Below are positions 18,951 through 59,454 of a stretch of DNA of 64,000 bases, piece after piece (positions within the stretch are counted from its first letter, which is position 1; every line of letters starts with the position of its first letter). The notes under the pieces were generated by a model, which was not told the DNA's origin, did not search any database, and worked only from the letters and a program-made list of their open reading frames with translations. Location of the stretch: sequence record PP886230.1. The stretch is one strand, 5' to 3'. The position numbers and the translations under genes were made by a program.

Positions 18951-19538
18951 ATGTTTTTAAAAAATACTTATGAATTAATTAAAATGCTTCAAAATATGAA
19001 TTCCGGTGGCTTGTTTCCCTATTACTCTGAGGATGAAACTCATCGTTTAGTCCTTAAATTGGATGAAACTGGACGTATTATATCACTAAGAACAACAGTC
19101 CCCAGTGTAGAACCAGTAATTACCAAATCAACTCAAAATTCAGGAACTGCTGTTAAAACACCACAAACATACAACTCTAATTACCAACAACCACAAATGT
19201 ACACGATTAGCACTCCACCTATTAAACGAGTTGCTTGTATTGTGAATATAAAAGTATCTAAGGACTATCGCGACTTAATATCAGTTGAATGGTCAGAACT
19301 AACATCATCATTAGCAACAAATGGATTTGTAGTAACAAATACAGGTCTAGCACAAAATGTGAAAGAAGGACAACAGATCATGAGTGCATTGTATCTTAGT
19401 AATGGTTGTGTTATCATCAATGGTAAGTTGTATAGCGATGCCGACCCCACTGCATTCACTGAAGATTTGATTGGTGATAAAGAATACAGCATTCTTGAAA
19501 TTATGAATTTGAAAAAGGTATATGAAAACCATGACTAG
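18951..19538 (+). CDS. Hypothetical protein
   Basis: Open frame in tiling; no motif recognised. Confidence 0.7.
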   Translation: MFLKNTYELIKMLQNMNSGGLFPYYSEDETHRLVLKLDETGRIISLRTTVPSVEPVITKSTQNSGTAVKTPQTYNSNYQQPQMYTISTPPIKRVACIVNIKVSKDYRDLISVEWSELTSSLATNGFVVTNTGLAQNVKEGQQIMSALYLSNGCVIINGKLYSDADPTAFTEDLIGDKEYSILEIMNLKKVYENHD

Positions 19539-20103
19539 ATTTCATCAAGATGATTTGCCATTTATACAAGAACTAGAAGAACTGGTGATAAGTATTATGG
19601 ATGAAATTAGTACTTGGGATATAACAGTTTTTCGAAATGTATATGATAAAGTGGTGAATTTTAAAAATGTTAATATTGAAGTAAAACATAATAATTTTTA
19701 CTTAACAAAACAATTCATTCTAACTCGACCAGGATCAAAGCCAGTTAAACGTAATTTATCATTCGGACACCTGATTGGTGCAGAAAATGTACATGATGAA
19801 TGGGTTGATTCAATCTATTCGTATACAAAAGAACTTATTCCTGATATTGAGAAAAAATATTATCTTAGTATCACATTAGATGAACAAGGAAAACTAAATG
19901 CGTATTCCATAAATTCATCAGCACACGTTCCATTACATTCAACGTCAATTGGTGATAAACAATTACTAATCGATTCATCAACATGGCACAATAGGGAAAG
20001 TTTCTCCGCTGAAACTTTTCAGTACTCGGTATCTGAACCAAAGTCTCCATTTGATTTTGTGTTTGTTAATAACATCCTTTTACGTTTTGGTGTAGGAGTC
20101 TAA
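19522..20103 (+). CDS. Hypothetical protein, divergent EExxFQxS-family member
   Basis: C-terminal FSAETFQYSVSE. Confidence 0.65.
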   Translation: MKTMTRFHQDDLPFIQELEELVISIMDEISTWDITVFRNVYDKVVNFKNVNIEVKHNNFYLTKQFILTRPGSKPVKRNLSFGHLIGAENVHDEWVDSIYSYTKELIPDIEKKYYLSITLDEQGKLNAYSINSSAHVPLHSTSIGDKQLLIDSSTWHNRESFSAETFQYSVSEPKSPFDFVFVNNILLRFGVGV

Positions 20104-20105
20104 TT

Positions 20106-20459
20106 ATGCTAATTTATTTGAGTGTTCTTGTTATTTCATTACTGGTATCATTAGCAGTACTGAAAGCTGTTGCCATCGGTCGTAGTAAAATTGACAGTAC
20201 TGAAACGAGTTCCGTTCTAGATTTGATTATGGATCATCCTAAAGTCTGTGGTATTATTGTATTGTTTGTTATTCTGATTAATACGTATATTGTCAGGGAT
20301 CATTTATATAATATGTATGATTGTAGTGTTAGATCTATATCACAAGGTGTTGAAACTGACTATAGCTGGTACTATGAGAAATGTAGATTTAAAAATCAGC
20401 ATGGTATTTGGGTTGATTTTGACAAACTACGTGGAACTCCTTCAGGAGAAGAAGAATAA
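20106..20459 (+). CDS. Hypothetical membrane protein
   Basis: Two hydrophobic helices; GGAG RBS. Confidence 0.7.
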   Translation: MLIYLSVLVISLLVSLAVLKAVAIGRSKIDSTETSSVLDLIMDHPKVCGIIVLFVILINTYIVRDHLYNMYDCSVRSISQGVETDYSWYYEKCRFKNQHGIWVDFDKLRGTPSGEEE

Positions 20460-20461
20460 TT

Positions 20462-20953
20462 ATGTTTGAGTTCCCAGAAGAGTCATTTGACTTTATTGAC
20501 CCTACTGATGATGGATACCGACACATTAACATTTATAGTAAAGCTAGAACTAAGTTAGGTAGAGATCTATCTAACTTTTCTTCACATAGCTTCACACTTG
20601 AACCATATGGTTGGTTCCCTTCAGTTGAAACATTTTACTTTTGGTTTTTAACTGGGCAAAAACATGATGACCTTAGAAAAGTATCTGGTGCAGCAGCAAA
20701 AGCAGCCGCTAACAAATATATGCATGATCGAATTGAAATGACGGATGATTGTATTTCTATTATTCAAGATGCTATTTGTGCTAAGATAATTCAAAATCCA
20801 GAGTTAGCCGAAAGATTAAGAAAAAGCAAGTTACCTTTTTACCATTACTATGTATATGGTGGTAAAGTTGTAGATGTATCCGACGAACATGATTGGTTTG
20901 TTAAAACATTCGAATATATAAGAACGGTGTTAAAGGAAAACTATAATGGGTAA
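20462..20953 (+). CDS. NADAR-like protein (T4 gp30.3-like)
   Basis: LSNFSSHSF...FPSVETFY...SGAAAK...KIIQNPEL..RL..S...FYHY pattern. Confidence 0.6.
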   Translation: MFEFPEESFDFIDPTDDGYRHINIYSKARTKLGRDLSNFSSHSFTLEPYGWFPSVETFYFWFLTGQKHDDLRKVSGAAAKAAANKYMHDRIEMTDDCISIIQDAICAKIIQNPELAERLRKSKLPFYHYYVYGGKVVDVSDEHDWFVKTFEYIRTVLKENYNG

Positions 20954-21224
20954 ATGTTGGGTATGCTTCAAGGTGTTTGATGAAGAATATGAAATAATAT
21001 TAGATGTATTGCCACAGCAGTACATGGTGTGTAATGAAAAATACAAATTGGACACCTACCCGACCCCCAAGTACATGGGAATATGTCCTTTGTGTGATGC
21101 AAATGGCGTGTCCAATAGTGAGATTTCATTCACTAACCAAGCCACAACTAACTGTGTATCTGGGTATATAAGAGAGAATCGAGAATATTTTATTAGGAGA
21201 TTATATGAACGACAAAATCTTTGA
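20946..21224 (+). CDS. Hypothetical Zn-ribbon protein
   Basis: CWVC and CPLC pairs. Confidence 0.65.
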   Translation: MGKCWVCFKVFDEEYEIILDVLPQQYMVCNEKYKLDTYPTPKYMGICPLCDANGVSNSEISFTNQATTNCVSGYIRENREYFIRRLYERQNL

Positions 21225-21435
21225 TACATATGACATCGATACTTTACTAACACCATCTGATAACAGTACTGTTAAAATGGACATGTACTGGATTGTCGTT
21301 GATAAAAAAGTATTTAGACATAAAATTACTAAAGTTTGGCAATGTAATAAAAACAAATCTATTGTTGAAGGATTGGCACAATGCATTCCTAATGCAGAGG
21401 TTTTATTTTTACCATATGCATATACAAAGGAATAA
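21205..21435 (+). CDS. Hypothetical protein
   Basis: AGGAG RBS. Confidence 0.7.
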   Translation: MNDKIFDTYDIDTLLTPSDNSTVKMDMYWIVVDKKVFRHKITKVWQCNKNKSIVEGLAQCIPNAEVLFLPYAYTKE

Positions 21436-21436
21436 A

Positions 21437-21598
21437 ATGAAAAAAACTTGGAAAATATTCACAATACCTGCTATAATGTTGTTATTGGCACTTTTCACAC
21501 CGCAGAGTCATGTATTGTCTCTTAACATTGTGGAAATAATTCTTCTTGTAATTCACTGTGTCGTGTGTTATAATTATGTAAAAGGTGATAAAGAATGA
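21437..21598 (+). CDS. Small membrane protein
   Basis: 53 aa, two hydrophobic stretches; AAGGA RBS. Confidence 0.6.
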   Translation: MKKTWKIFTIPAIMLLLALFTPQSHVLSLNIVEIILLVIHCVVCYNYVKGDKE

Positions 21599-22017
21599 AG
21601 TTCTTTAAAATTCGAATTGGTGTAAGTTCTGGTTTATCTCATTGGGTATTTTATGATTTACCTGATAGTTATACTATTGATGATGTAATTGATTTATATA
21701 CCGAAGATCAACAATGGGTGTTAGATACCGAAACACATAGAATTGATTGTCAAGAGATTAGTGAAGAAGATTACAAACACGGAAAGCAAGCCATGAAGTA
21801 TTTTGAAACAAATATCAAAATGCTGACTGAAAACGTATTTCCAGTAAAAGAATGGGCGATTTTACTTGCTAATCCTAAAAAACCTGTTAGAATTGGTTAT
21901 CCAAATTTTCATATGGTGTATCGTATGAATGATAAGCGAGAGCTTAACTATCAATACGATTACGATTCATCTAAGTTTGGAGTTCTTAAACAATTTTTAA
22001 AGGCTTATCCAGTATGA
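21595..22017 (+). CDS. Hypothetical protein
   Basis: ATGA coupling on both sides. Confidence 0.7.
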   Translation: MKFFKIRIGVSSGLSHWVFYDLPDSYTIDDVIDLYTEDQQWVLDTETHRIDCQEISEEDYKHGKQAMKYFETNIKMLTENVFPVKEWAILLANPKKPVRIGYPNFHMVYRMNDKRELNYQYDYDSSKFGVLKQFLKAYPV

Positions 22018-22349
22018 GTGAAGATAGTAAAGAGTATATTTTACGTTGTTCTTGTGGCGATAAAATGGAGCATTGCGTTCACATTGCACAATTTGACTTG
22101 ACAGAGGAATATGGAGATGATAAACTTGGTCAATGTCTGATAAGTATGCGTTTAAATCCTTTTTTAAAATGGTATAACCGTGTATGGGTTGCAGTAAAGT
22201 ATGTTTTTGGTGTAAACGACTATCAATATGTAGAAGCAACAATTGATGTTGACATTCTAAAAGAAGTTGTGTTACAATTAGAAGATACTAGAACTGATGA
22301 GGTTAAAAAAGAACAAAGAGAAAAACGTACTGATGTGAAGGTTTTATGA
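22014..22349 (+). CDS. Hypothetical protein
   Basis: CSC..HC motif; ATGA coupling. Confidence 0.7.
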   Translation: MSEDSKEYILRCSCGDKMEHCVHIAQFDLTEEYGDDKLGQCLISMRLNPFLKWYNRVWVAVKYVFGVNDYQYVEATIDVDILKEVVLQLEDTRTDEVKKEQREKRTDVKVL

Positions 22350-22540
22350 GTACTGAACTTTATGAAAAAAAGTACTGTACAAATTGCTCAACTGAGTATA
22401 CAATACAAGGTATGTTGATTTGTACAATATGTCAGTCAAAGAAATCAGCAACTTTCATCGTTGATGATAGATTTGGTGATTTGAAACAGTTTAAAGCAAA
22501 CCGCAATCTTCGTATTTTTAGCAATCTAAATAAGGAATAA
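22346..22540 (+). CDS. Hypothetical Zn-ribbon protein
   Basis: CTNC and CTIC pairs. Confidence 0.65.
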   Translation: MSTELYEKKYCTNCSTEYTIQGMLICTICQSKKSATFIVDDRFGDLKQFKANRNLRIFSNLNKE

Positions 22541-22543
22541 TAT

Positions 22544-22972
22544 ATGAATATCGAACAAACTATCCGTGAACATTCTTTCTTCGCTCCAGAAACTGGTCGT
22601 GTTATTGAGAGCGTCAAAATCGAAGAACTAATGGTCAATGTTAAATACAAAGAACCAAATGATGAGATTAGCAGTACTTTTTGTGCTCTACGTGCACCAT
22701 TCCGTAATGAAAAAGCTAAGAAACCAGCATATGTTCTTGCCATTGCACTGGGTTGTGTTGTAAAACTTGCAGTTGATGAAAATCTTCTGAATATTAAAGT
22801 TGCACCAAGCAATGACGATGAAAACATTGATTTGAACTTTGATGGTTCTCTTGATGAAGATGTATTTTTCCAACAGTCACTTGTTTACGACTTCCGTACA
22901 GTGACACATTCTCACATCAAGTTCATTAATGAAATGGTTGAGATTGTTGCTGAATACGAAGAATCTCTCTAA
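22544..22972 (+). CDS. EExxFQxS-family protein
   Basis: LDEDVFFQQSLVYDF near C-terminus; TAAGGA RBS. Confidence 0.75.
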   Translation: MNIEQTIREHSFFAPETGRVIESVKIEELMVNVKYKEPNDEISSTFCALRAPFRNEKAKKPAYVLAIALGCVVKLAVDENLLNIKVAPSNDDENIDLNFDGSLDEDVFFQQSLVYDFRTVTHSHIKFINEMVEIVAEYEESL

Positions 22973-22982
22973 GTAAATACAA

Positions 22983-23005
22983 AAGCCTCCATTATGGAGG
23001 CTTTT
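22983..23005 (+). terminator. Intrinsic terminator
   Basis: AAAGCCTCCA-tta-TGGAGGCTTT-T. Confidence 0.75.
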
Positions 23006-23025
23006 ATCACATAAGGAAATGAAAT

Positions 23026-23577
23026 ATGATAGACCAAATTAAAATCCTTACAAAGCAAATCACTGATTTTCTTTCTGATAAAGATGGATTTAATACAGAA
23101 GTAAAAATGCACGGTGTTAGTGTTGATGTAATTGCACCAAATGGTAATGTAACAAGTTACGACATGTATGAATTACTTCTTTATACTCTAGCAGTACGTA
23201 AACTAGGTAGTGATATTGAACTCAATATCAATACTGATGAAAGTGGGAATAAAATTTTTGCAATCAACACCAGTGCTAAATTCGATATCAGTACTGAAAT
23301 TAAAAAAATAAATGAAAGTTTTATTGGCTTTAAGCATGAATCAATTCAAAGTGTTTTTATTGGAAAGCAAACTTCTAATAGTGAATGCCCATATTGTGTA
23401 ATGACTTTATATAAAGATGGAAACTGGATGCGTCAAGATTTAGTATTTGCTGAACTTCTGTATGCATTTACACATGAACTTAAAATCGAATTGGACGATA
23501 GTGTTTATTGCTTTAAGAAAATTCGAAATATAACTAAAGATATACAAACCCAACTTAAAGAATTAAATGATAAATAA
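23026..23577 (+). CDS. Hypothetical protein
   Basis: TAAGGA RBS. Confidence 0.7.
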   Translation: MIDQIKILTKQITDFLSDKDGFNTEVKMHGVSVDVIAPNGNVTSYDMYELLLYTLAVRKLGSDIELNINTDESGNKIFAINTSAKFDISTEIKKINESFIGFKHESIQSVFIGKQTSNSECPYCVMTLYKDGNWMRQDLVFAELLYAFTHELKIELDDSVYCFKKIRNITKDIQTQLKELNDK

Positions 23578-23692
23578 ATATACCAGAAATGGTTAACATA
23601 TCATGTTACTTTCCTCCCTTACATAATAATGATGCGTTATTATATTTTCATTTTGTTCTTATTCCCCTTTTGGTACAAAATCATTTTAGTAC

Positions 23693-23716
23693 TGCCCCGA
23701 TCTTCGGGGCATTTTT
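23693..23716 (+). terminator. Intrinsic terminator
   Basis: TGCCCCG/CGGGGCA stem followed by TTTTT. Confidence 0.75.
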
Positions 23717-23737
23717 CTTATCTAAAATTGAGGATAT

Positions 23738-24133
23738 ATGAAGAACAATATTGGAACTTCAATAATTAAACCACTTTCTTATTACCTTGAAAAATTTAGA
23801 AGCACAAATGGTAATAAATTTAATAATATATTTCAGTTCTCTCATAAAGAATATATTACAATTGATCATTTTTCAAAGAAACTAATGTATGTAAATGATA
23901 ATAGTCATATTATTAAATTATCATTCGATATTGAGTTAGATAAATTAACATTTACTGAATACATTAATCAAAAAACTTCTTTTTTATGTCAATACAATAG
24001 GAAAGTATATAGTAATATTTCTATGTATCTAAATGATGAATATCACTTTCAACAATCTACAATAGAAGAAGTATTGTTCAGTACTGAAGAATTAAAAGAA
24101 CTATATTACTGGTATAATTATTTCACATCTTGA
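23738..24133 (+). CDS. EExxFQxS-family protein
   Basis: LNDEYHFQQSTIEE; GAGGA RBS. Confidence 0.75.
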   Translation: MKNNIGTSIIKPLSYYLEKFRSTNGNKFNNIFQFSHKEYITIDHFSKKLMYVNDNSHIIKLSFDIELDKLTFTEYINQKTSFLCQYNRKVYSNISMYLNDEYHFQQSTIEEVLFSTEELKELYYWYNYFTS

Positions 24134-24158
24134 CATTATTGTGGGTTTATCCTACAAT
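24130..24158 (+). promoter_or_regulatory. sigma70 promoter
   Basis: TTGACA-17 bp-TACAAT, with a dyad over spacer and -10. Confidence 0.75.
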
Positions 24159-24188
24159 ACATGATGATGCTGCATTGAGGATAAATTT

Positions 24189-24599
24189 ATGAGTTTAGAT
24201 TTACACAATGAACTAAAATATTTTTTAGATTTGGACATATCAGAATTGAACCACCACGTCAATCATATGACTAGTACTGTATGGTGGTCTAATGAACAAG
24301 ACGACCCAATTATCCAACTAAGTGATGAATCGTCAATTATGCGATTTTATAAGATTAATTATAAAAAGAACATCAAGATCACATATGTACCATACAAAAA
24401 CATACTACTAGTCGAAACACTTAATCCAAGTTCTTTATTAAAAATCACCGATTTAGATACATTACAAACAAGTGAATCTTTATTCCAACGTTCATTAGTT
24501 GATGATCTTGGTGGTATTACTTTTGAAGATATATTACAATTGAAGAATATGTATAGTGAATTGTTGGAGATTAAAAACACTTTAGTAATGGGGAATTGA
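24189..24599 (+). CDS. EExxFQxS-family protein
   Basis: TSESLFQRSLVDDLGGITFEDI; GAGGA RBS. Confidence 0.75.
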   Translation: MSLDLHNELKYFLDLDISELNHHVNHMTSTVWWSNEQDDPIIQLSDESSIMRFYKINYKKNIKITYVPYKNILLVETLNPSSLLKITDLDTLQTSESLFQRSLVDDLGGITFEDILQLKNMYSELLEIKNTLVMGN

Positions 24600-24600
24600 T

Positions 24601-25005
24601 ATGGTAAGTTTACTAGATATTGATAATACCAGTTTAGTGCTGGTGAAAAAAGGTTTAATTCCAAATTCTAAAAAAATTGATTATGCTGTTATTGAAACAA
24701 ATATTGGAAATATCTGGTACGACTCTGAAAGGGATATTGTGTTTAGCTGTGTAGACAGTGATCGTTCTGAATGTTGTAGAGTCGGTCATGACGGACAATT
24801 TGTTTTTGAATTTCGTTATTGGAAGGACGCAAAATTTCACCAAGAACTGGTTGCTTTGTCAAATGAACTATATACAGAAGAATCGTTCTTCATGGCTAGT
24901 ACTATTAATGATTTTGGTTCAGTTACATTTGAGTACTATAAAAAAATATACGCACTATCCAGAGAAGTTATGAAAATTATCAGAACTGCTGAAGGTAAAG
25001 AATAA
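24601..25005 (+). CDS. EExxFQxS-family protein
   Basis: YTEESFFMASTINDFGSVTFEY. Confidence 0.75.
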   Translation: MVSLLDIDNTSLVLVKKGLIPNSKKIDYAVIETNIGNIWYDSERDIVFSCVDSDRSECCRVGHDGQFVFEFRYWKDAKFHQELVALSNELYTEESFFMASTINDFGSVTFEYYKKIYALSREVMKIIRTAEGKE

Positions 25006-25006
25006 C

Positions 25007-25384
25007 ATGACTACTATATATGATATTTTGGGTGTTCTGAGTAGAAATATAGATGATGATTTTGTTATTGTTCAAGATACTAGAAATACATTTCAACTAC
25101 CAATAGGTTCACCAGATAGGTTAATTTTTAATAGATACTCAAATGAACTAACTTACATCCATGATGGGATTGCAATTGTATCAGTTTCTATAAACGACTA
25201 TACAATACGATATGTATATGACTTCAACGATTATTGTACAAGAATCCACAGTATTGATATTTCCGAAGAGGAACTATTCCAATTGTCATTGATTGAGAAA
25301 AATGTAATAGGAATTACAGAAATTGGTATTATTAAAAAAGCATTAAACTATACAAATATAAGAATTAATGGTGGGTGCGGATGA
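25007..25384 (+). CDS. EExxFQxS-family protein
   Basis: ISEEELFQLSLIE. Confidence 0.75.
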   Translation: MTTIYDILGVLSRNIDDDFVIVQDTRNTFQLPIGSPDRLIFNRYSNELTYIHDGIAIVSVSINDYTIRYVYDFNDYCTRIHSIDISEEELFQLSLIEKNVIGITEIGIIKKALNYTNIRINGGCG

Positions 25385-25836
25385 ATGTTGACGAAATAAA
25401 AAATCATTTTGAAATTGCAATGTCATGTGAATTTGACACACAACGTGTTCATGACCCGAAAGAACATATACGCATTTGTTGTGAATTGTCAGATGATTGT
25501 AATATTTTTATTGGAAAAACCTATGACATGATCGATCTTTCATGTATAGATCCATTGGAAAGAAAAACAAAATATTTATATCTGTACAACACAACATCAG
25601 ATACGATTGCAATACAACTAATATCAACCACAACATCCCAAAGTTATTATAACATAACTGAGGTTAGTAGTTTAACGTTAACCGAAGAAGGATTCTTTCA
25701 ACAATCGCTTATTCGTGAAATTGGTGTTAGTTATGATGAGTTAAATGTATTAGTAGATTGTTTCGAAAAATTGAGTACTTTTGTATTATCCCTTTTTAAT
25801 ATACAGTCGCAAAATCCAATGGTGGTGAAATGCTAA
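25381..25836 (+). CDS. EExxFQxS-family protein
   Basis: LTEEGFFQQSLIREIGVSYDEL; ATGA overlap start. Confidence 0.75.
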   Translation: MNVDEIKNHFEIAMSCEFDTQRVHDPKEHIRICCELSDDCNIFIGKTYDMIDLSCIDPLERKTKYLYLYNTTSDTIAIQLISTTTSQSYYNITEVSSLTLTEEGFFQQSLIREIGVSYDELNVLVDCFEKLSTFVLSLFNIQSQNPMVVKC

Positions 25837-26270
25837 ATCCAAGTAAATTTCTCCACTTACTTTCGATAACATCAATACCGGATCTTACCAGTGAAACTAA
25901 TGAATATCGTGAAGCTGGGGTGGTGTCTATGGAACTCGATACATTTGACCACAAATGCTATGTGACATATGACCCACCGCGTTATGGTAAAGAACATTCT
26001 TCTTTTATTTTTGTATTCGTATACACTGTATATGATAATACAACACTTGATGATGTTTGTATTGACACTTACGAAATTTGTGATAATATCATAACTGATG
26101 ACAACAATAATTCATTTGATATGTCACTATATAACACAGAAGAATCGTTGTTTCAACTTAGTACTGTTATTGATGCACCATCATTAGAAGATATAAAACA
26201 ATTTCAAGAACATCTTGACGCAGTTCGTGAGATGTTCTATAATCATTATCCAGAAGTAGAGTTCAATTAA
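25830..26270 (+). CDS. EExxFQxS-family protein
   Basis: NTEESLFQLSTVIDAPSLEDI. Confidence 0.75.
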   Translation: MLNPSKFLHLLSITSIPDLTSETNEYREAGVVSMELDTFDHKCYVTYDPPRYGKEHSSFIFVFVYTVYDNTTLDDVCIDTYEICDNIITDDNNNSFDMSLYNTEESLFQLSTVIDAPSLEDIKQFQEHLDAVREMFYNHYPEVEFN

Positions 26271-26284
26271 CTAAAGGTAATAAG

Positions 26285-26545
26285 ATGACTAAAGTAGTTC
26301 GTAAACGCCACATGATGAACATGGATGAATTTCGCACATTTGACAAATATCGTACTATGTTTCGTATGCTTTCACAGGGCCGTCCAATCGTCATTGTAAC
26401 AGAGAATTACATGTCACCTGAGATTATGTTTGGTAATTATGAAAAGGTCTTCATGTTGTACGTGAAGCGTGGATTACTTACAATCAAGACATTAGCTGAA
26501 GCAACTGATGAAGATATGGATGGTGATAATACCTTTACCATGTGA
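26285..26545 (+). CDS. Hypothetical protein
   Basis: AAGGT RBS; fills tiling. Confidence 0.7.
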   Translation: MTKVVRKRHMMNMDEFRTFDKYRTMFRMLSQGRPIVIVTENYMSPEIMFGNYEKVFMLYVKRGLLTIKTLAEATDEDMDGDNTFTM

Positions 26546-26553
26546 GGAAATAT

Positions 26554-26631
26554 ATGTCTGAAAAGCCAAAAGAACCATTAGATCGTGATGATGATTTTTA
26601 TGACGAACGATATGGAGATGATGATGAGTGA
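26554..26631 (+). CDS. 25-aa highly acidic micro-protein (not in ORF track)
   Basis: GAGGA RBS; MSEKPKEPLDRDDDFYDERYGDDDE. Confidence 0.55.
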   Translation: MSEKPKEPLDRDDDFYDERYGDDDE

Positions 26632-26875
26632 ACATAGTGATGTGCTTAAAAAGATTTTAAAGGAACTTGATGGTGAGTTTAATGTCACAGAAGAAGAATA
26701 TGAGCATTGGAAGAAAGGTTTTGAACAACTAACCGAGTATGATAAAGTGTTCAATATGATTGGCGTAATTAGCCAGTACTTACTCGGTGGAGGACGTGCA
26801 AGTGCTTCAATTCTGGCATCTGCAATCATCTGTACATCACGATGGTGTGATGAAAAAAGTTTGGAAGATTTCTAA
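26624..26875 (+). CDS. Hypothetical protein
   Basis: GGAG RBS inside the upstream micro-ORF. Confidence 0.65.
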   Translation: MSEHSDVLKKILKELDGEFNVTEEEYEHWKKGFEQLTEYDKVFNMIGVISQYLLGGGRASASILASAIICTSRWCDEKSLEDF

Positions 26876-26927
26876 ATAAGATGCTATAATATATTATAGT
26901 ACCTTAACAATATAAAAAGGATTTTAT

Positions 26928-27788
26928 ATGAAACCTATCCGAGTACTTTCTCTTTTTAATGGAATGAGTGTGGGATATATGGCATTGCAAGATGCTGGTA
27001 TCCCAGTTGAAAAATATTATTCATCCGAAATTGACAAGTACGCAATAGCTGAATCTCAAGCTAACTTTCCTGATATTATCCAATTGGGTGATGTAACTAA
27101 GTGGAGAGAATGGGATATTGAGTGGGATAAAATAGATTTATTAATGGGTGGTTTCCCATGTCAAGCCTGGTCAGTTGCAGGTAAACAGGGTGGTTTAAAT
27201 GATATACGTGGGCAGTTATTTTTAGTAATGGTTGAAATTTTTGATCATATCAAAAGTCTCAATCCTAACTTGAAATTTCTGTTTGAAAATGTTAAAATGA
27301 AGGAAGATTTCAAAGAATACATTAATAGTATTTTAGGAATCACGCCAGTACTGATAAACTCCCAGCATTATACGCCTCACTTCAGGCAGAGATATTACTG
27401 GTACAGTACTGATAAGCTTTTTATACCACCTGCATTATCCAATGCACCTAAACTTCAAGATATTATTGAAGATGGTTGGTACACTGACAGAACCGCTTCG
27501 TACTGTATAGATGCTAACTATTTTAAAGGTGGTGATTGTAACCAGTACTTTAATAAATCCAGACGACAATTGGTGTTTCGTGACCCAGTGATCAGTCGTC
27601 AATATCTATTAGAGAATGGCAAAAGAAATATTGACTATAGACACTTAAGTGTAGTAGAATGTTGTAAATTACAGGGTGTTCCTGAAGATTTCTTTAAAGT
27701 GTCTAGTAAGACACAAGCATACAAAATGCTTGGGAATGGATGGACTATGCCAGTTATATCACATTTACTAAGAGAGATATTCTTTTGA
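26928..27788 (+). CDS. Orphan C5-cytosine DNA methyltransferase
   Basis: Motif I VLSLFNG, motif IV GGFPCQ, motif VI ENV, motif VIII QRYYW, motif X LGNGW; no restriction gene adjacent. Confidence 0.92.
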   Translation: MKPIRVLSLFNGMSVGYMALQDAGIPVEKYYSSEIDKYAIAESQANFPDIIQLGDVTKWREWDIEWDKIDLLMGGFPCQAWSVAGKQGGLNDIRGQLFLVMVEIFDHIKSLNPNLKFLFENVKMKEDFKEYINSILGITPVLINSQHYTPHFRQRYYWYSTDKLFIPPALSNAPKLQDIIEDGWYTDRTASYCIDANYFKGGDCNQYFNKSRRQLVFRDPVISRQYLLENGKRNIDYRHLSVVECCKLQGVPEDFFKVSSKTQAYKMLGNGWTMPVISHLLREIFF

Positions 27789-28270
27789 ACATAAACAAAT
27801 ACCAAACTTATATAAAACGTACAGAAAGTTTCAAACGGCTGGCTGTAAAATCTGAATTAGAATTTAATTTGTATTATCCTAATATTGGTGATGAGGTATT
27901 TTATTGCTCTCATTCAAAGAATGGAACTTTACTTAAATCGGGTAAAGGAACTATTGTTGATATGACCGCAAATTTCAGAGGTAAACTTAATGTAATGTAC
28001 AAAGTACAAGATTCAAGTACTGAGTGTATTCATGAAGTGATGCATAACATACCTGCATATCCAAAAGATTTTGTTCAGCTAATATCTCGAAGGGAGAAAC
28101 CTATGTTTTATTGTGGTTACGACAAATTAACCAAACAAATTATTCCTAATACTATGGGAAAATTTAAAAGTGATGTGAAATCTGAACTTGAAAAGAAATT
28201 TGGCACGTCATGGGAAACTGAAAACGAGTTTATCGAAATTCGTTTAATTGAAATTACTATACTTGAATAA
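27785..28270 (+). CDS. Hypothetical protein
   Basis: Probable TTG start overlapping the MTase stop. Confidence 0.6.
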   Translation: MNINKYQTYIKRTESFKRLAVKSELEFNLYYPNIGDEVFYCSHSKNGTLLKSGKGTIVDMTANFRGKLNVMYKVQDSSTECIHEVMHNIPAYPKDFVQLISRREKPMFYCGYDKLTKQIIPNTMGKFKSDVKSELEKKFGTSWETENEFIEIRLIEITILE

Positions 28271-28274
28271 TTAC

Positions 28275-28299
28275 AAATCCACGCATTGCGTGGATTTTT
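28275..28299 (+). terminator. Intrinsic terminator
   Basis: AAATCCACGC/GCGTGGATTT stem with T run. Confidence 0.7.
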
Positions 28300-28312
28300 C
28301 ACAGGTGCATAT

Positions 28313-28828
28313 ATGCCAATTCCTTATGTTAAAATTATTAATAATATTCTCGATTCATGGGAAGATGTTATTACGGGTAAAAAGCAACCATCACCAGTAC
28401 ATGCTTTATCTGGGAAACTTCAATTCAGAATGTCAAACCAAACTGAAACATTTAATAATCATGATATTTGCATTACATTAAAAACACCTATTAGTATTGT
28501 AATTAAAAAAAATAAAGATGATGAATTGACATTATCTATTGGTCGTGATAAAATCATTTTAAGTAATTTGTCTGAAGAAGAATTCTTTCAAAGAAGTACT
28601 ATTATCGATATGAAAGATTTCACATATGAATCATTGGTTGAACTCAATACACGTTTTAACGATATTCAGGAACGATTGCGACCAATTCTTCGTATCGAAG
28701 AAGAAGCCTGGATTGAAAGTATTAGGAAGATGCAAGAAATGTTGAAAGAAAATATTAACAATCTGGGTAAAGCTACAATGGAATTTGGTAAAACTTTTAA
28801 ACTGAACTTTTCAAAGGATCGTAAATGA
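28313..28828 (+). CDS. EExxFQxS-family protein with C-terminal helical extension
   Basis: LSEEEFFQRSTIIDMKDFTYESL. Confidence 0.75.
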   Translation: MPIPYVKIINNILDSWEDVITGKKQPSPVHALSGKLQFRMSNQTETFNNHDICITLKTPISIVIKKNKDDELTLSIGRDKIILSNLSEEEFFQRSTIIDMKDFTYESLVELNTRFNDIQERLRPILRIEEEAWIESIRKMQEMLKENINNLGKATMEFGKTFKLNFSKDRK

Positions 28829-29280
28829 AAATTGATAATTTGATTCATGTTTTAGGATCTTTACATAAAATATTATCACATCTACATGAGATAAAGAAAC
28901 TGGGATTTAACATCTCAAATTCAATTGAAACTACATTTAAATATCAATCAATTACTGGTGATGGTTATTACATAATCGAATATACTTATGAAACCGATCC
29001 AGACTTCTATCCTCTTACGTTGAGAATTTATCCAACAAATCCGAGAGGAATTCACGACATATCATCAATTTCACTTGATCCAGATGGTGAAACGAGTATT
29101 GAATACAATAATGATTCAAAACCAGAATTTTACATTGATGATATTAAAATGATGTTCAACGATGAATATGTGTTCCAGCAAAGTACAGTGCATGATGTTG
29201 GAAGTACTAATGGACAATTTTGGAATACATGTTATTATCATATGATTGAAATTTGTAAATTACTAAAAGGTGATGATTAA
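28825..29280 (+). CDS. EExxFQxS-family protein
   Basis: FNDEYVFQQSTVHDVG. Confidence 0.75.
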   Translation: MKIDNLIHVLGSLHKILSHLHEIKKLGFNISNSIETTFKYQSITGDGYYIIEYTYETDPDFYPLTLRIYPTNPRGIHDISSISLDPDGETSIEYNNDSKPEFYIDDIKMMFNDEYVFQQSTVHDVGSTNGQFWNTCYYHMIEICKLLKGDD

Positions 29281-29663
29281 TGAAATACAGCATTGAAGTA
29301 CATTACACTACAGGGGACACTGAAACTGAAGATTCAGTTACCAATACATTGGATGTTCAATGGGAATCAAAGGATGAGGCAGTTGTAGCATTACAGTCTT
29401 TGAAAGAGCATTGGGTATTCTTTAAGAAACTCGATGATGCATATAGTAACGAACGTGCGACAATAATCGATGAAGCCAAACATAAAGAATGGTTTGATCC
29501 AATGTCATGTGAATTCTCTTTCTTTGTAAAAATTGGAGATAAAAAAATTCCAGTACGAACACCGTGGAACGGCTACTTTGAAACTCTTCATAATGCACGA
29601 GTTGTCGCTGTTGATAATCCTGAGCAAATCGATTTCGATTCATTGGACTGGAAAAAACTATGA
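29280..29663 (+). CDS. Hypothetical protein
   Basis: TAATG coupling. Confidence 0.7.
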   Translation: MKYSIEVHYTTGDTETEDSVTNTLDVQWESKDEAVVALQSLKEHWVFFKKLDDAYSNERATIIDEAKHKEWFDPMSCEFSFFVKIGDKKIPVRTPWNGYFETLHNARVVAVDNPEQIDFDSLDWKKL

Positions 29664-30103
29664 CAGTACTGCACCAATTGAAGAAGGTTAAGCATCCAGT
29701 TGTATACGAGGATTGGAAACGACAGAAGTTGATGGGTGATTTTTATTTCCCAAAATCTAAAGTACTAGCAACGTCAAAAGCTATATACTTGAAATATAAG
29801 GATGAAGATTGTTTGTGTATTCAAATGGGATTCCATCCTAAAGTTGGTTTGTTTACAACAAATCAAACATTTTATAAATTTAGAATTCAAAAAGATACAT
29901 TTAGTATTCATATCGAAAAACATGATGTACAAGATACAATTTATCGTGTGGAAAGTGAGCCTTTGAATCTTGTTGAGATCCCGTACAATAATTTAGAAGA
30001 AATGTACTTTCAGCAGTTGACAATACAAGAAGACTTTGGTATGATAGGACTTCAAGAGTTAGAGATGATTAAACAAATTCGTGATATCTACTTTAAGGAG
30101 TAA
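29660..30103 (+). CDS. EExxFQxS-family protein
   Basis: NLEEMYFQQLTIQEDFG. Confidence 0.75.
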   Translation: MTVLHQLKKVKHPVVYEDWKRQKLMGDFYFPKSKVLATSKAIYLKYKDEDCLCIQMGFHPKVGLFTTNQTFYKFRIQKDTFSIHIEKHDVQDTIYRVESEPLNLVEIPYNNLEEMYFQQLTIQEDFGMIGLQELEMIKQIRDIYFKE

Positions 30104-35493: not shown

Positions 35494-35982
35494 ATGCCGA
35501 TTCGTGGTGTCCCAGAACCATTAATGGAAGTTATTAAGCATGTTCGCATTGGAGATCGAGAAGTTAATCTTCGCCGTAATAACATTTATTACTTTAAAAC
35601 TTCAGAAATGAGTTCTGTGCAGATTGTCATTGGTACATCTATTAAGATTACTCGTGTACTTGATGGTAGTACTGACTTCGTTGAATATAATGTACTTACT
35701 AATAAAGTAACGCATATATATAAATGGAGTGGGTATAAAACTATTAAGTATGAATTTGACTTAGCTAGAACTGAAGAAGAACGATTTATGCTGAGTACTA
35801 TCAATCCGGCAAACTATCCCGATCTTGATGCATTTTTGCTAATTTTAAAATTGTATAATGAAGCAAATCAGAAAGCTAAAGAGTATGATAGAATCATGTA
35901 TGAACGCCGAAAAGAACGTGCACAAAAAAGTTATGATCTGTATGATAGCCCATACGTGAAATATAGTAAGGGGTCGAAATGA
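35494..35982 (+). CDS. EExxFQxS-family protein
   Basis: RTEEERFMLSTINP; GAGGA RBS. Confidence 0.7.
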   Translation: MPIRGVPEPLMEVIKHVRIGDREVNLRRNNIYYFKTSEMSSVQIVIGTSIKITRVLDGSTDFVEYNVLTNKVTHIYKWSGYKTIKYEFDLARTEEERFMLSTINPANYPDLDAFLLILKLYNEANQKAKEYDRIMYERRKERAQKSYDLYDSPYVKYSKGSK

Positions 35983-39526: not shown

Positions 39527-40164
<638 letters not shown>

Positions 40165-41183: not shown

Positions 41184-41734
<551 letters not shown>

Positions 41735-41793: not shown

Positions 41794-41794
41794 A

Positions 41795-43369: not shown

Positions 43370-43424
43370 GATAGCTTCTAGTCAGTACTGATTCCTCCTT
43401 ATGTATAGAAGCTATCACTTTTTT
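43370..43424 (+). terminator. Long-stem terminator-like hairpin with anti-SD-like loop
   Basis: GATAGCTTCTA/TAGAAGCTATC 11-bp stem, loop contains TTCCTCCTTA, T run follows. Confidence 0.6.
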
Positions 43425-43544
43425 ACGTATAATGATATTACCCTCAAATTCATTATATTCGTTACCCTCTAACAGTATCTTTTTATTCCTCTTGGATGCT
43501 GTAATTTAGAAGTTGACTTTTTAACTTCTACTGTGTTATACTTA

Positions 43545-43572
43545 AGGCTGATTCGATGAATCGGCCTTTTTT
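43545..43572 (+). terminator. Intrinsic terminator
   Basis: AGGCTGATTC-gat-GAATCGGCCT-TTTTT. Confidence 0.7.
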
Positions 43573-43581
43573 CTTATATAG

Positions 43582-44428: not shown

Positions 44429-44831
44429 TATTTTAAATGAAAAAACAGTTGATGTTGTTATTGGTGTTCTTAACACCGCAACTTCATTTCAGAAGAAACA
44501 CAGTGTTGTATACTTTGGTGAAGATTGTTGGCTGAACTATACTAATAATTCGTTTATAATTCGTGTAGAGGCTGATGATATTGGATTAACCGTTCAGGTA
44601 GGATGTACCAAAACTGACAAACAAATCACTGTCATTGTTGATAAACTTACGTCTTCTTTTTATGATAGTATAGATGATTGTGAACACTGTAGTTCAACAT
44701 TTTATGATACAGAAGAAGAACATTTTATGGAAAGTACTGTTCAAGAGTTAGCTATTCCATATAAGCTAATGAAAGCAGTGAGTGATTTAATTTTAAAATA
44801 TAAAAAAATAGGAGTTACTAATGCAATTTAA
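44421..44831 (+). CDS. EExxFQxS-family protein
   Basis: DTEEEHFMESTVQELAIPY; AGGA RBS. Confidence 0.75.
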   Translation: MSNILNEKTVDVVIGVLNTATSFQKKHSVVYFGEDCWLNYTNNSFIIRVEADDIGLTVQVGCTKTDKQITVIVDKLTSSFYDSIDDCEHCSSTFYDTEEEHFMESTVQELAIPYKLMKAVSDLILKYKKIGVTNAI

Positions 44832-45267
44832 TGGTAAAGTTTCCAAAGTAGGTTTGGTTTTTGAAAACTGTGAATTTGTTGATATTGATGTAAAGAATGT
44901 TTTATGGATGCATATTGCTGATGAGAAGACTCTTTGTAGCCGTTTTTCAAACGGTCTGACAATTAGTACTGTTATCGGTGAGTTCGGTATTGCATTACGC
45001 AGCAATACACCATCGGATTTCATGGACAACTCTACACTGTTAGACCGTTTAAAAATGCGTGACGTTACACACGTTTATCTATATGATACTAACGGTGTTG
45101 AACAGCGTTATGTAGTTGAATGGGCTAATTATAACCTTAGTGATCAATATTCAGTAAACCAGCGTGTTCAAATCACCCCTGGTGGTAATATTGTGTTTGT
45201 TAGTTCAACTGGTAAATTAATCAGTGTAGATGATAAAAACATTGACCTATTCACAGCATATAACTAA
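44821..45267 (+). CDS. Hypothetical protein
   Basis: AGGAG RBS; LVFENCE motif. Confidence 0.75.
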   Translation: MQFNGKVSKVGLVFENCEFVDIDVKNVLWMHIADEKTLCSRFSNGLTISTVIGEFGIALRSNTPSDFMDNSTLLDRLKMRDVTHVYLYDTNGVEQRYVVEWANYNLSDQYSVNQRVQITPGGNIVFVSSTGKLISVDDKNIDLFTAYN

Positions 45268-45278: not shown

Positions 45279-45698
45279 ATGAAAACAATCAAAATTCATT
45301 TCAAAGACACTTGGACAGAAGTAAGTACTGGTAATATTCAGGATATTTTATATAGTACTGAAACTATTCATGTTTATGATGAAGAGACTGCTACCGAGCA
45401 GTTAAAAGTTTTGCATCGTAGTGTTGGTGTGCACACCGAATATGGCATTAAACATACTCGTGAATTACTTAATACTAATCACATTGAAACCCGTAAAGCA
45501 AACTTATCAAAAGAAGAAATGTTCGATTTCATCCTGAACCATAAAGTTCATATTGAGCCTGATGGGTCTATATGGGAGAACACTGCTGGACAAAAAGTGC
45601 TGAAAAAATATCATGTTTCAATTGATAATGTAAAAATGTCAGGGTATGATTTGGAAGATGCAATTAATGAATATGTATCTAGGCAGAGGGCAAATTGA
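45279..45698 (+). CDS. Hypothetical protein
   Basis: Open frame in tiling. Confidence 0.7.
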   Translation: MKTIKIHFKDTWTEVSTGNIQDILYSTETIHVYDEETATEQLKVLHRSVGVHTEYGIKHTRELLNTNHIETRKANLSKEEMFDFILNHKVHIEPDGSIWENTAGQKVLKKYHVSIDNVKMSGYDLEDAINEYVSRQRAN

Positions 45699-55405: not shown

Positions 55406-56194
55406 ATGAGCACTATAGATGAACTGATTCGACGGAATTCAAAATATTACCAACCATCAGAAATTGTAGGTAACATTACCAAATCAGAGTTTGGTCCAAA
55501 TACTCGAAAACTCATTCATGTAATGTCACGTGATGGCTTTAAATGTGATTGTTGCGGTGAATCTAATGTAGTATTCACTTTACACAAGCACAGTACTAAA
55601 GATCGTTATAAATTCAGACCTTATGTACTTAAAGGGAAACGCCTTGTACGCATGACGTTAGACCATAATGTACTGGACTGTCTTCAGGGCGGTAATGATA
55701 AAGAGAACATGACTGCACTGTGTGAAGATTGTAACGCATTACGCCAGCATAAGTTTGCTGAATACAGTGAGTTTAAACACTGGTATCATAACGCGGATCG
55801 TTCAATCGAGCCTGACGTTAACTACTGCTTCATTGAGTACATTAAGAATGCCAAAGATACATACATTCTTAAATCAATGTCACCTATTACCGTGTTTCCT
55901 GAGAACCTATTCACTACATTAAAGAATAGTTTTATTGTGGGTGATATTGATGCATTCAAGTATTTTGACAAAGGTGCAAAACATTTTGAAATTCAATGTC
56001 TTAGTACTGCACTATGTGAACTCATTAAAATTTACATAAAAGAGTATTTGGGTATTGACAATGTACGTGTACCAGAGTATACTTTTTCTATTGAATTCGA
56101 TTGTGAATCAATCAAAGAGTTTGGAATTCTTTTCAATAAACAAATAGAACTTGCAATTCAAAACGAAATCAAGTACTATACTACTAACATTTAA
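55406..56194 (+). CDS. HNH endonuclease with C-terminal extension
   Basis: RDGFKCDCCG...TLDH...GGNDKENMTALCEDCN. Confidence 0.8.
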   Translation: MSTIDELIRRNSKYYQPSEIVGNITKSEFGPNTRKLIHVMSRDGFKCDCCGESNVVFTLHKHSTKDRYKFRPYVLKGKRLVRMTLDHNVLDCLQGGNDKENMTALCEDCNALRQHKFAEYSEFKHWYHNADRSIEPDVNYCFIEYIKNAKDTYILKSMSPITVFPENLFTTLKNSFIVGDIDAFKYFDKGAKHFEIQCLSTALCELIKIYIKEYLGIDNVRVPEYTFSIEFDCESIKEFGILFNKQIELAIQNEIKYYTTNI

Positions 56195-57724: not shown

Positions 57725-57726
57725 CA

Positions 57727-58095
57727 ATGAGCCTTGATACAACACGTGCAGCAGATTTATTAACTCGTCTGAATGATGAAGAATATCTTGCTGAGATAAA
57801 GTACAAGCTTGACAAACTTGTTCGAAGTGCTGAAGTAATTGAAGTTGAAGGTCACTTACCGATGGATCAATACCATAGGTTCAAGGAAGATATGGTTTAT
57901 TATCCTAATGAAATTTGGATTGAGTGGCAACATTGGACTAACAAAACTCTTCGCATTGAAGGGTATTGTGTGAAGTATGAAAGTTCACCTGGTGATGTTA
58001 CAAAAACTCTATCAATTTGGTGTACAAAAACAAATGAACTCGTTGAGGTGAATTTGAATTATATGAATGGATTCCGTTGGGGTGATGTTAAATGA
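57727..58095 (+). CDS. Hypothetical protein
   Basis: GGAG RBS. Confidence 0.7.
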   Translation: MSLDTTRAADLLTRLNDEEYLAEIKYKLDKLVRSAEVIEVEGHLPMDQYHRFKEDMVYYPNEIWIEWQHWTNKTLRIEGYCVKYESSPGDVTKTLSIWCTKTNELVEVNLNYMNGFRWGDVK

Positions 58096-58367
58096 TTAAA
58101 AAACTCTTGACTGGAATCATTGTGTGCAGTACAATGTTTCTTACAGCATGTAATGATGACGGCAGGTTTAGTGCAAAAGACTTAGTTCGTCAGGATTGTA
58201 CATTCACAGGTAAGTCTTTTATTAACGAGTATGAAATATGTACACAATCAGGTCGTATCTGTGGTGGTTGGGAAAAACGACAGGAGCGATTGTATGTATA
58301 TGAATGCCCTGGACATCACAACAAAGTACTAAGCACACACAAACTTGTTTATGATAAGGTTGAATAA
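58092..58367 (+). CDS. Lipoprotein, Cys-rich
   Basis: Signal peptide with lipobox LTAC; four further Cys. Confidence 0.75.
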   Translation: MIKKLLTGIIVCSTMFLTACNDDGRFSAKDLVRQDCTFTGKSFINEYEICTQSGRICGGWEKRQERLYVYECPGHHNKVLSTHKLVYDKVE

Positions 58368-58582
58368 TGACTACCAATGAAATGATGCAGGTTATTTGGG
58401 ATAAAGGTTGTGATATTAAAATCACTAGTACTGATGTTCGTGTATTCAAAACTGAATATATGGAGTACTTGGACCTTGATACTTATAATAATATTGTATC
58501 AATTGAACACAAAGGTGCAGTACTGGAAACCATTGACGTAGTACTCAAGAAAGCTACCGACCTATTAGGAGTGGCAGTGTGA
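58367..58582 (+). CDS. Small hypothetical protein
   Basis: TAATG coupling. Confidence 0.65.
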   Translation: MTTNEMMQVIWDKGCDIKITSTDVRVFKTEYMEYLDLDTYNNIVSIEHKGAVLETIDVVLKKATDLLGVAV

Positions 58583-58735
58583 ATAACAAAGAGTGGGAAG
58601 ATTACCGCAAGAAGTGCAGGGAGTTTGATAAAGAACTTACTGGTACAGTGAATGCAGTAATGTGGGTATCTGTAATTATTGCAGTTCTTGCGTTGGGTGC
58701 TATTATTATTAATAAATTATTCTAAGGCGAATATC

Positions 58736-58936
58736 ATGTTTACTTTATATCTCGCAGTAGTTCTCACCAATGGTGAAATCACTCGTACTATTGGTGAAGG
58801 TGTATATAAAACACCAGACCAGTGCTACTCTGCCACTCATTGGCCTCGCGATAGTGGGGATGAAACTCGCACTGAATTCAAATGCATGAAAGTAAAAGGT
58901 GATTTTGTTAACCTTAAGGTTATCGAGGCGAAATAA
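58736..58936 (+). CDS. Small secreted/membrane hypothetical protein
   Basis: Hydrophobic N-terminus, two Cys; layout like 54968-55177. Confidence 0.65.
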   Translation: MFTLYLAVVLTNGEITRTIGEGVYKTPDQCYSATHWPRDSGDETRTEFKCMKVKGDFVNLKVIEAK

Positions 58937-59454
58937 TGGATATTAATGAGTTGTTGAAATTAGTGTTTAATCGTGAACGCCGCGATACAAGACCAATTGA
59001 ATATCAAGATGTGATACGCATTGAAACTGATTTCTGTTATGGTAAAACAACTCATGACCTTTTGAATCTCTCTGGAAAACGCTATGCTGATGTTTGTTTT
59101 TCAGAGAGAAGTGATGGTTCAGAAATAACGAGTACTGATATTGTTTGTTACGCACGCAGTGCTGATAAATCTTATGAAATAGAACTTATATATTCCCCTA
59201 GTTCTAAAACAAATCATCACCGCCATATTTTATATGATGTTTATACACCACCTGGTATTGCTGAATATTTTGTTATTGATTATAGTACTGAAGAAAATGT
59301 GTTTCAACAAAGTTTGATTCATAACTTTGAGGTGAATGATCCATTAGTACCAAAGTTGTTCAAACTACTTGACACCATAGATGTTGATTTTGAATTTGTT
59401 ATGTGCATTAGAACTTCTTTATTCAATGAATTCATGGAACTTTTTAATATATGA
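58936..59454 (+). CDS. EExxFQxS-family protein
   Basis: STEENVFQQSLIHNF. Confidence 0.75.
   Translation: MDINELLKLVFNRERRDTRPIEYQDVIRIETDFCYGKTTHDLLNLSGKRYADVCFSERSDGSEITSTDIVCYARSADKSYEIELIYSPSSKTNHHRHILYDVYTPPGIAEYFVIDYSTEENVFQQSLIHNFEVNDPLVPKLFKLLDTIDVDFEFVMCIRTSLFNEFMELFNI

Follow-up and report, generated by a model that had tools for sequence, protein, structure and literature searches.

A large, undescribed family of small, strongly diverged proteins sharing one C-terminal motif in RaK2-like jumbo phages

The 64,000-nt stretch of DNA analysed here (the window) corresponds to positions ~248001-312000 of Escherichia phage vB_EcoM_E9.1 (PP886230.1; hereafter E9.1), a PBECO4/121Q-like jumbo phage (Asteriusvirus) with a genome of 368 kb. 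Window positions 22000-30000 were 100% identical to PP886230.1 270000-278000. An earlier note, made from the sequence alone, had pointed to many small proteins of this region that look unlike one another and share a motif near the C-terminus, and had read the motif as the docking module of an adaptor library. Our analysis confirmed that the genes belong to a real, large and undescribed family, of a scale not reported for phages; the adaptor interpretation was upheld only in part. All family genes are labelled 'hypothetical protein' in the annotations of phages E9.1, phAPEC6, WPEC5 and JNE01.

Regular expressions, hidden Markov models (HMMs) and a whole-genome control showed that the motif is shared by dissimilar small proteins far above chance. 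A loose regular expression found it in 14 plus-strand open reading frames (ORFs) of the window and in no others, a motif HMM converged on 16 ORFs, and full-length family HMMs converged on 18 ORFs, all on the plus strand, with E values from 2e-8 to 3e-19 (Table 1). With the family HMMs, no minus-strand ORF and no further ORF of the window reached E 0.01. The gene at 29660..30103 was detected by the full-length profiles only. Three more genes (34483-34875, 35979-36383 and 39527-39898) have an eroded but legible motif, with per-sequence p values from 4e-5 to 5e-4, and align to the family profile across almost their whole length. The motif of 35979-36383 is one residue short, and the JNE01 relative of this gene scored E 7.6e-5; the JNE01 orthologue of 39527-39898 (97% identical) scored E 8.3e-7. 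The control was the genome of phage EC22.5-2 (OR845138.1; 98.6% identical to the window region), where 34 family ORFs carried the strict motif, as against 1 of the 1280 other ORFs of at least 60 amino acids (aa).

Several details of the first description were revised. The count is 18 robust and three weak members in place of 21 clear and two weak ones, and the series begins at 22544 and not at 19522, as 19522-20103 and 20106-20459 failed every membership test. These two ORFs, together with 23026-23577, 29280-29663, 34923-35492, 44821-45267 and 45279-45698, showed neither a convincing motif nor a convincing match to the profile. Counted from the N-terminus, the motif begins after 81-119 residues. 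Its distance from the C-terminus, given earlier as 25-45 aa, is usually 35-50 aa and reaches 85 in 28313-28828, the product of which is spanned by phrog_38573 starting at the ATG at 28313.

Table 1. Family members, predicted promoters and tRNA genes in the window. E values are from the family HMMs; pI, isoelectric point.
Feature	Position	Strand	Motif or site (position)	Remarks
Member, 142 aa	22544..22972	+	DEDVFFQQSLVY (22853-22888)	E 4.2e-14; pI 4.6
Member, 131 aa	23738..24133	+	NDEYHFQQSTIE (24032-24067)	E 3.2e-13
Member, 136 aa	24189..24599	+	TSESLFQRSLVD (24468-24503)	E 2.4e-18
Member, 134 aa	24601..25005	+	TEESFFMASTIN (24874-24909)	E 1.2e-17
Member, 125 aa	25007..25384	+	SEEELFQLSLIE (25262-25297)	E 2.2e-8
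Member, 151 aa	25381..25836	+	TEEGFFQQSLIR (25681-25716)	E 6.5e-19
Member, 146 aa	25830..26270	+	TEESLFQLSTVI (26136-26171)	E 1.3e-16; pI 4.1, net charge -21
Member, 171 aa, long extra C-terminal tail	28313..28828	+	SEEEFFQRSTII (28571-28606)	E 2.8e-18
Member, 151 aa	28825..29280	+	NDEYVFQQSTVH (29158-29193)	E 5.4e-16
Member, 147 aa	29660..30103	+	Variant, LEEMYFQQLTIQ (29993-30028)	E 2.6e-19
Weak degenerate member, 130 aa	34483..34875	+	SEEDEFQKNTT (34759-34791)	Per-sequence p 4.5e-4, profile positions 5-101
Member, 162 aa, basic C-terminal tail	35494..35982	+	TEEERFMLSTIN (35770-35805)	E 7.2e-19; pI 9.2
Weak degenerate member, 134 aa	35979..36383	+	VEEEFQYNLL (36273-36302)	Per-sequence p 1.1e-4, profile positions 14-126
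Member, 117 aa	38714..39067	+	TEEEYFQMSTVQ (38960-38995)	E 2.1e-14
Weak degenerate member, 123 aa (E9.1 annotation)	39527..39898	+	DEADEFQKRTV (39785-39817)	Per-sequence p 3.7e-5, profile positions 5-126
Member, 141 aa	42088..42513	+	TEEKFFQYCLLN (42385-42420)	E 2e-14; pI 4.1
Member, 121 aa	42506..42871	+	TEESLFQYSMIN (42761-42796)	E 1.5e-16
Member, 142 aa	43582..44010	+	Variant, TEEMYLQLNFVH (43885-43920)	E 4.1e-16
Member, 142 aa	44000..44428	+	DSEMFFQLSTVY (44309-44344)	E 1.4e-14
Member, 151 aa	44376..44831	+	TEEEHFMESTVQ (44709-44744)	E 3.7e-15
Isolated member, 172 aa	58936..59454	+	TEENVFQQSLIH (59287-59322)	E 7.5e-12
Sigma70-like predicted promoter	22249..22278	+	TTGACA-18-TACAAT	11/12; consensus match only; 5' of operon leading into 22544-26270 cluster
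Sigma70-like site	24130-24158	+		11/12; just 5' of 24189
Sigma70-like site	38655-38682	+		11/12; 5' of 38714
Sigma70-like predicted promoter	41678..41705	+	TTGACA-16-TATAAT	12/12; 5' of tRNA-Thr and 42088-44831 cluster
tRNA-Gly	37017-37090			E9.1 annotation
tRNA-Ser	38119-38208			E9.1 annotation
tRNA-Ser	39930-40019			E9.1 annotation
tRNA-Met	40174-40252			E9.1 annotation
tRNA-Asn	40257-40329			E9.1 annotation
tRNA-Thr	41998-42070			E9.1 annotation

The consensus obtained from 224 sequences of several phage genera is [T/S]-E-E-x-[Y/F/L]-F-Q-x-S-[T/L]-[V/I]-x-D. In order, the conserved positions are T/S in 87%, E in 90%, E in 87%, Y/F/L, F in 100%, Q in 90% (otherwise M), S in 92%, T/L in 96%, V/I/L in 98% and D/N/E in 94% of the sequences. 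The motif is followed by ~25-30 conserved residues with hydrophobic helical periodicity. The only freely variable positions of the motif helix are x4, x8 and x12. As these form a single i/i+4/i+8 stripe, the helix appears to be embedded over most of its circumference and not to be a free docking peptide. The near-invariant Ser is encoded by TCN in seven window members and by AGT in eight, and both available codons are used for the motif Phe and Gln. The use of these two unlinked codon sets for Ser indicates that selection on the motif acts at the protein level. A DNA-level repeat as the origin of the motif was rejected on account of this variation of codons between members and of the synonymous divergence (dS) of orthologues, which was alike inside the motif module (0.61) and outside it (0.58).

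A piecewise scan of the EC22.5-2 genome found 64 members, all on one strand, 18 of them in the region equivalent to the window (303-337 kb). A second, larger cluster of ~41 members, many of 150-197 aa, lies at 57000-86400, ~220 kb from that region, and small groups were seen at 5.6, 98.8, 138.9 and 151.7-153.2 kb. A RaK2-like Klebsiella phage has 43 members, which likewise share a single strand and form two main clusters. The share of the genome taken by the family is ~8%. The number of copies in the syntenic region is 18 in E9.1, 19 in WPEC5 and 21 in JNE01. When the consensus was used in a tblastn search, the family was present in 60 of 50,697 phage records, from phages infecting Escherichia, Klebsiella, Salmonella, Erwinia, Yersinia, Cronobacter and Pectobacterium and from one Xanthomonas phage. 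All are RaK2-like jumbo phages of 310-386 kb except two records of less than 100 kb (Escherichia phage IA-38 and Klebsiella phage phiKp_21). The family thus consists of many, mostly tandem paralogues in one viral lineage, as multigene families do.

BLAST clustering splits the family into groups of no more than five, and the 18 window members fall into at least 17 PHROGs, each of unknown function; this splitting explains why the family has been overlooked. In RaK2, ~10% of the gene products were described as paralogues, and nothing further was said of them (PMC3622015). For 121Q, Hua et al. mentioned, but did not describe, more than 30 similar genes that form an array, which may or may not be the motif family (PMC5646251). 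EC22.5-2 also has a different array on the minus strand at 6300-24700, coding for 16 proteins of ~392 aa with a median identity of 30%, which is its largest family at BLAST level. These are probably the 41-kDa 'DNA condensation proteins' of phAPEC6 virions, and they may also be the 121Q array of Hua et al.

The family was not found among described proteins, as Pfam, NCBIfam, PADLOC and the PDB gave no match and all matches in PHROGs were of unknown function. In Pfam, no match was obtained at E <=1 for 10 members, nor at E <=0.01 for all 18. NCBIfam had no match for family members, and PADLOC returned 0 families for all 18. A search of the PDB with the family profile gave only two matches, which were judged to be chance hits on strings like ...EENYFQ. 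The sole near-significant one (E 0.065) covered residues 142-178 of 3ihk chain A, a thiamin pyrophosphokinase, and ended in ...LTEENYFQ, which shows that motif searches can be led astray by short E-x-x-Y-F-Q strings.

The earlier note saw no similarity among the N-terminal parts, and at the sequence level this holds, one sub-group excepted. When HMMs of the pre-motif parts were built with one member left out, they failed to find that member again (E 0.04-85), and in hhalign comparisons of orthologue profiles restricted to the N-terminal parts, 6 of 153 pairs beat the reversed control (Wilcoxon p 0.08). The sub-group comprises 42088, 42506, 43582, 44000, 24189 and 24601, which can be aligned over most of their length; the products of 42088 and 42506 align over residues 1-131 (E 6.5e-14), and that of 24601 is alignable with that of 42506 over residues 32-123. 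Since sequence alone cannot show the common ancestry of the N-terminal parts, the case for it rests on predicted structures. The AlphaFold model of the 42506 product (predicted local distance difference test, pLDDT, 78; predicted template modelling score, pTM, 0.75) consists of a helix at 4-15, five strands, a helix with the motif at 87-96 and a last helix at 104-120. The model of the 22544 product (pLDDT 93, pTM 0.87) has a helix at 3-17, seven strands, the motif helix at 105-114 and a last helix at 122-141. The order of elements is thus the same in the two models, although no similarity in sequence could be detected between the N-terminal part of 22544 and other members. Both form one compact domain in which the motif helix sits between the sheet and the final helix, and the helical blocks holding the motif have pLDDT values of 88-92.

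In a Foldseek search of BFVD, the structures of which were predicted independently of our two models, the 42506 model matched uncharacterised proteins of phages UB, CBB, RaK2 and others over the whole length (127-137 aligned columns, 10-30% identity, template modelling (TM) scores 0.46-0.71). When 1.84 billion representative proteins were searched with a profile, 144 clusters of relatives were obtained, all of 62-217 aa and mostly of 120-170 aa. The motif begins 80-130 residues into these proteins and ~40-50 residues before their end, so that its relative position is constant, and none of the 144 has it on any other architecture. The shared layout of the models, the BFVD matches, the uniform relatives and the embedded motif helix indicate that the family consists of diverged paralogues of one predicted fold and not of a portable docking module on different domains. 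The earlier proposal of different recognition domains joined to such a module is not supported, and these observations come near to the outcome that the earlier note itself had set against adaptors, namely diverged paralogues sharing one fold. Foldseek searches of the PDB gave nothing with E <0.001 for either model, and Bet v1/START, lipocalin, LolA and p32 were rejected as the fold (TM all <0.4). As far as two models can tell, the fold would be absent from solved structures.

Family genes diverge faster than the genes around them. Median orthologue identity between E9.1 and WPEC5 was 75% for the family and 89% for neighbours (p 5e-4), and in the comparison with JNE01 it was 36% and 61%, respectively (p 1e-4). 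The WPEC5 orthologues of 25381 and 43582 were just 49% and 43% identical, and 35494 was the most conserved member between phages (97% identity to its WPEC5 orthologue). Both sequence and copy number change faster than in flanking genes, which is a further trait of multigene families. The pooled ratio of nonsynonymous to synonymous divergence (dN/dS) was 0.33 for the N-terminal part, 0.19 for the C-terminal motif module and 0.20 for neighbouring genes, from which we infer that all copies are under purifying selection and that the sheet part is the least constrained. The constant module and the faster-evolving rest assumed in the earlier note are thus retained, but not as separate domains. The pI was below 5 in 14 of the 18 members, as against 29% of neighbouring ORFs. 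The least acidic members, 28313-28828 (pI 6.8) and 35494-35982 (pI 9.2), have a K/R/E-rich tail of 45-50 residues beyond the second helix.

Sigma70-like sites (11-12 of 12 consensus positions) number 30 on the plus strand and 2 on the minus strand of the window, where ~3 are expected. Ten perfect TTGACA-N16-18-TATAAT sites were seen (at 16489, 30574, 32434, 32981, 41678, 48549, 50395, 51757, 56700 and 61014). Judged from its sequence, the whole window looks as if it is transcribed by the host polymerase. That several of the genes lie behind sigma70 promoters was confirmed in part: plus-strand sites are located directly 5' of 24189 and 38714 and 5' of the operons holding 22544 and 42088 (Table 1). 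In the EC22.5-2 genome, sites of the same type number 101 on the coding strand and 12 on the other. The published virion proteome of phAPEC6, with 62 proteins, contains none of the orthologues gp120c-gp134c (PMC7247149), although absence in one mass-spectrometry study is no proof.

The explanation that we prefer, and to which we give about an even chance of being right as a whole, is that of a single-fold family expanded in tandem, with products directed at the host. The data show the genes to be hyper-diverged paralogues of one small protein of ~120-170 aa. For each product a single compact domain is predicted, made up of an N-terminal helix, a 5-7-stranded antiparallel sheet and a C-terminal helix-loop-helix, the first helix of which is the motif. 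Growth of the family, mostly in tandem, has raised the copy number in RaK2-like jumbo phages to ~43-64 per genome, and ~21 copies lie in the window. Purifying selection keeps the copies while they diverge more than their neighbours, most of all in the sheet part. Beyond this, the fold would have the conserved helix as its keystone. The aromatic and aliphatic residues of this helix may pack on the sheet, and its Thr, Glu, Gln, Ser and Asp may cap and link the two helices; the sheet and the exposed helix faces would be free to vary. The products would be soluble, mostly acidic, non-virion proteins made early from host sigma70-type promoters. They most likely act as diversified binders or inhibitors of host proteins in host takeover and counter-defence, and different copies would suit different targets or host strains, like the multigene families of large eukaryotic DNA viruses. 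The members are candidates for such factors because they are small, soluble, acidic, probably early, fast-evolving and variable in copy number between close relatives.

Several points weigh against this explanation. Nothing connects any of the members with a defence system or with a target in the host, and the null result with PADLOC says little, as this database covers defence systems and not counter-defence. The dN/dS ratio is <1 everywhere, so that positive selection is not shown. The case for early expression consists solely of consensus promoter matches, and the density of family genes along EC22.5-2 shows no significant correlation with that of promoters (rho 0.24, p 0.17). Both models were built from a family-wide alignment, which may have pulled them towards a common layout, and the burial of the motif is deduced from the conservation pattern and predicted secondary structure. 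In addition, the near-invariant polar residues E, E, Q, S and D exceed usual packing needs and could form a site for a shared ligand or partner.

This last point leads to the adaptor library of the earlier note, in which the conserved helix docks all members on one phage or host partner (for instance a protease, RNA polymerase or scaffold) and the variable rest of each recruits a different target. The conservation of five polar motif positions (87-94%) and the invariant F among the 224 sequences, which is stronger than in the rest of the fold, would suit such docking, as would the numerous copies with differing surfaces and the faster evolution of the non-motif part (dN/dS 0.33 vs 0.19). However, the search of 1.84e9 proteins met the motif on no other architecture, the models make it an integral helix, with a single variable stripe, inside a compact domain, and for the 'variable domains' one common fold is predicted. 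No candidate partner was found, nor any match to PRANC, F-box or other known adaptor modules. The layout that had been likened to poxvirus PRANC proteins was not upheld, as the 18 members gave no PRANC/F-box-like profile match in Pfam and the variable part is not an independent domain in the two models, where the motif helix lies inside the compact domain. A weaker form, in which the conserved polar residues serve as one partner or oligomerisation site, could apply without separate domains. We regard the adaptor library as unlikely. It is also doubtful that the invariant helix is a common handle for a shared partner or for mixed oligomers and that the hypervariable sheets form a combinatorial library which neutralises host defence or housekeeping proteins and sets host range.

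The C-terminal helix-loop-helix and the N-terminal helix might instead be the interface of homo- or mixed oligomers, as in the p32/MAM33 trimer, with the motif conserved for assembly and not for a foreign partner. The order of elements and the acidity fit textbook p32, and C1QBP/p32 was among the best TM-scores of both models (3rpx 0.38 and 0.31, 1yqf 0.30), but these Foldseek matches were not significant (E 0.2-2.7, TM <0.4) and Pfam gave no MAM33 match. We hold this to be rather improbable.

It is highly improbable that the products are virion-internal or assembly proteins with a shared targeting signal, packaged and injected with the DNA as in T4. Hypervariable proteins with one short conserved element do recall the T4 internal-protein locus. 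An inner body is present in 121Q and phAPEC6 (PMC5646251, PMC7247149), but the orthologues are missing from the phAPEC6 virion proteins, the genes stand amid sigma70-type promoters typical of early genes, and the motif is internal and helical and not a cleaved N-terminal peptide. Hardly any weight can be given to a protease-processing site, in which E-x-x-[Y/F]-F-Q followed by x-S would be cleaved to free the C-terminal helix: only the likeness of the consensus TEEEYFQQS to 3C/TEV-type ExxYxQ(S/G) sites speaks for it, whereas 30 further residues are conserved with helical periodicity, the window showed no 3C-like protease, and a TEV-like site was rejected as the principal explanation in view of the confident prediction of the motif as a helix within the fold (pLDDT 88-92).

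Other genes of the window were noted beside the family. Annotated genes that lie amid the small ORFs code for a DNA methyltransferase (26928-27788), an RNA polymerase sigma factor of the phage (53352-54317) and an HNH endonuclease (55406-56194). In JNE01 a 1890-bp ORF (L004 7567-9456) replaces the methyltransferase at the same position. The six tRNA genes annotated in E9.1 at 37017-42070 alternate with family members; the tRNA content of WPEC5 and JNE01 is unlike that of E9.1, and WPEC5 has additional HNH endonuclease genes close to its tRNAs (L003 20327-20722 and 22524-23066). A mini-family of three ORFs of ~60 aa (36552-36734, 36795-36989 and 37314-37514; mutual identity 54-57%) also lies beside the tRNA genes. 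It is separate from the motif family.

No function is known for more than 80% of the genes of jumbo phages. Here, ~60 'hypothetical proteins' per genome, spread over at least 17 PHROGs, are brought together in a single family that has one predicted fold and can be recognised by one diagnostic motif, and its invariant F, Q and S offer a mutational handle on the role of the family. The multigene-family pattern of large eukaryotic viruses would thereby be extended to phages. Iyer et al. (2021) described a zinc-ribbon expansion of ~35 copies in Bacillus phage G and termed it 'unprecedented' (PMC7824862); the motif family would surpass it, and, if this is true, no larger lineage-specific expansion would have been reported in any phage. 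Both are expansions of one small protein in a jumbo phage lineage. The motif family has more copies (43-64) and a different fold without zinc ligands, is far more diverged, as its small BLAST groups show, and has been kept across several phage genera.

Among other known systems, the T4 internal proteins are dissimilar small proteins from a plastic locus with one short shared element. They are packaged, and their capsid-targeting sequence is an N-terminal stretch of ~10 aa that the prohead protease cleaves off. The motif, in contrast, is an internal helix near the C-terminus, 81-119 residues into the protein, and the orthologues are not in the virion proteome. In the acidic, trimeric protein p32/gC1qBP/MAM33, seven antiparallel strands are preceded by one N-terminal helix and followed by two C-terminal ones. 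This is also the order in the 22544 model, and the acidity is shared. The protein p32 gave the best TM-scores in the PDB, but these were only 0.30-0.38 with E >=0.2 (3rpx, TM 0.38, E 0.24, probability 0.54). It is a eukaryotic, mitochondrial protein of ~200 aa with no sequence or Pfam match to the motif family. The likeness of the models to p32 may serve as a lead and is not a match.

In tandem poly-immunity arrays (SUKH/SMI1-KNR4 and other Imm proteins), of which viral versions are known, every paralogue is presumed to neutralise a protein of its own. No Pfam, NCBIfam or Foldseek PDB match to SUKH, SMI1_KNR4 or Imm proteins was obtained for the motif family, and no toxin genes lie near it; like them, it forms arrays of small, diverged alpha+beta paralogues. 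Families similar in organisation are those of large DNA viruses, such as MGF110, MGF360 and MGF505 of African swine fever virus, the ANK/PRANC and Bcl-2-like proteins of poxviruses and US22 of cytomegalovirus. The host here is bacterial, the members are single small domains without a match to those families, and the motif family lacks the separable constant domain of ANK/PRANC proteins. What they have in common is dozens of tandem, fast-diverging paralogues that take up a sizeable share of the genome, vary in copy number between relatives and lie apart from the structural modules.

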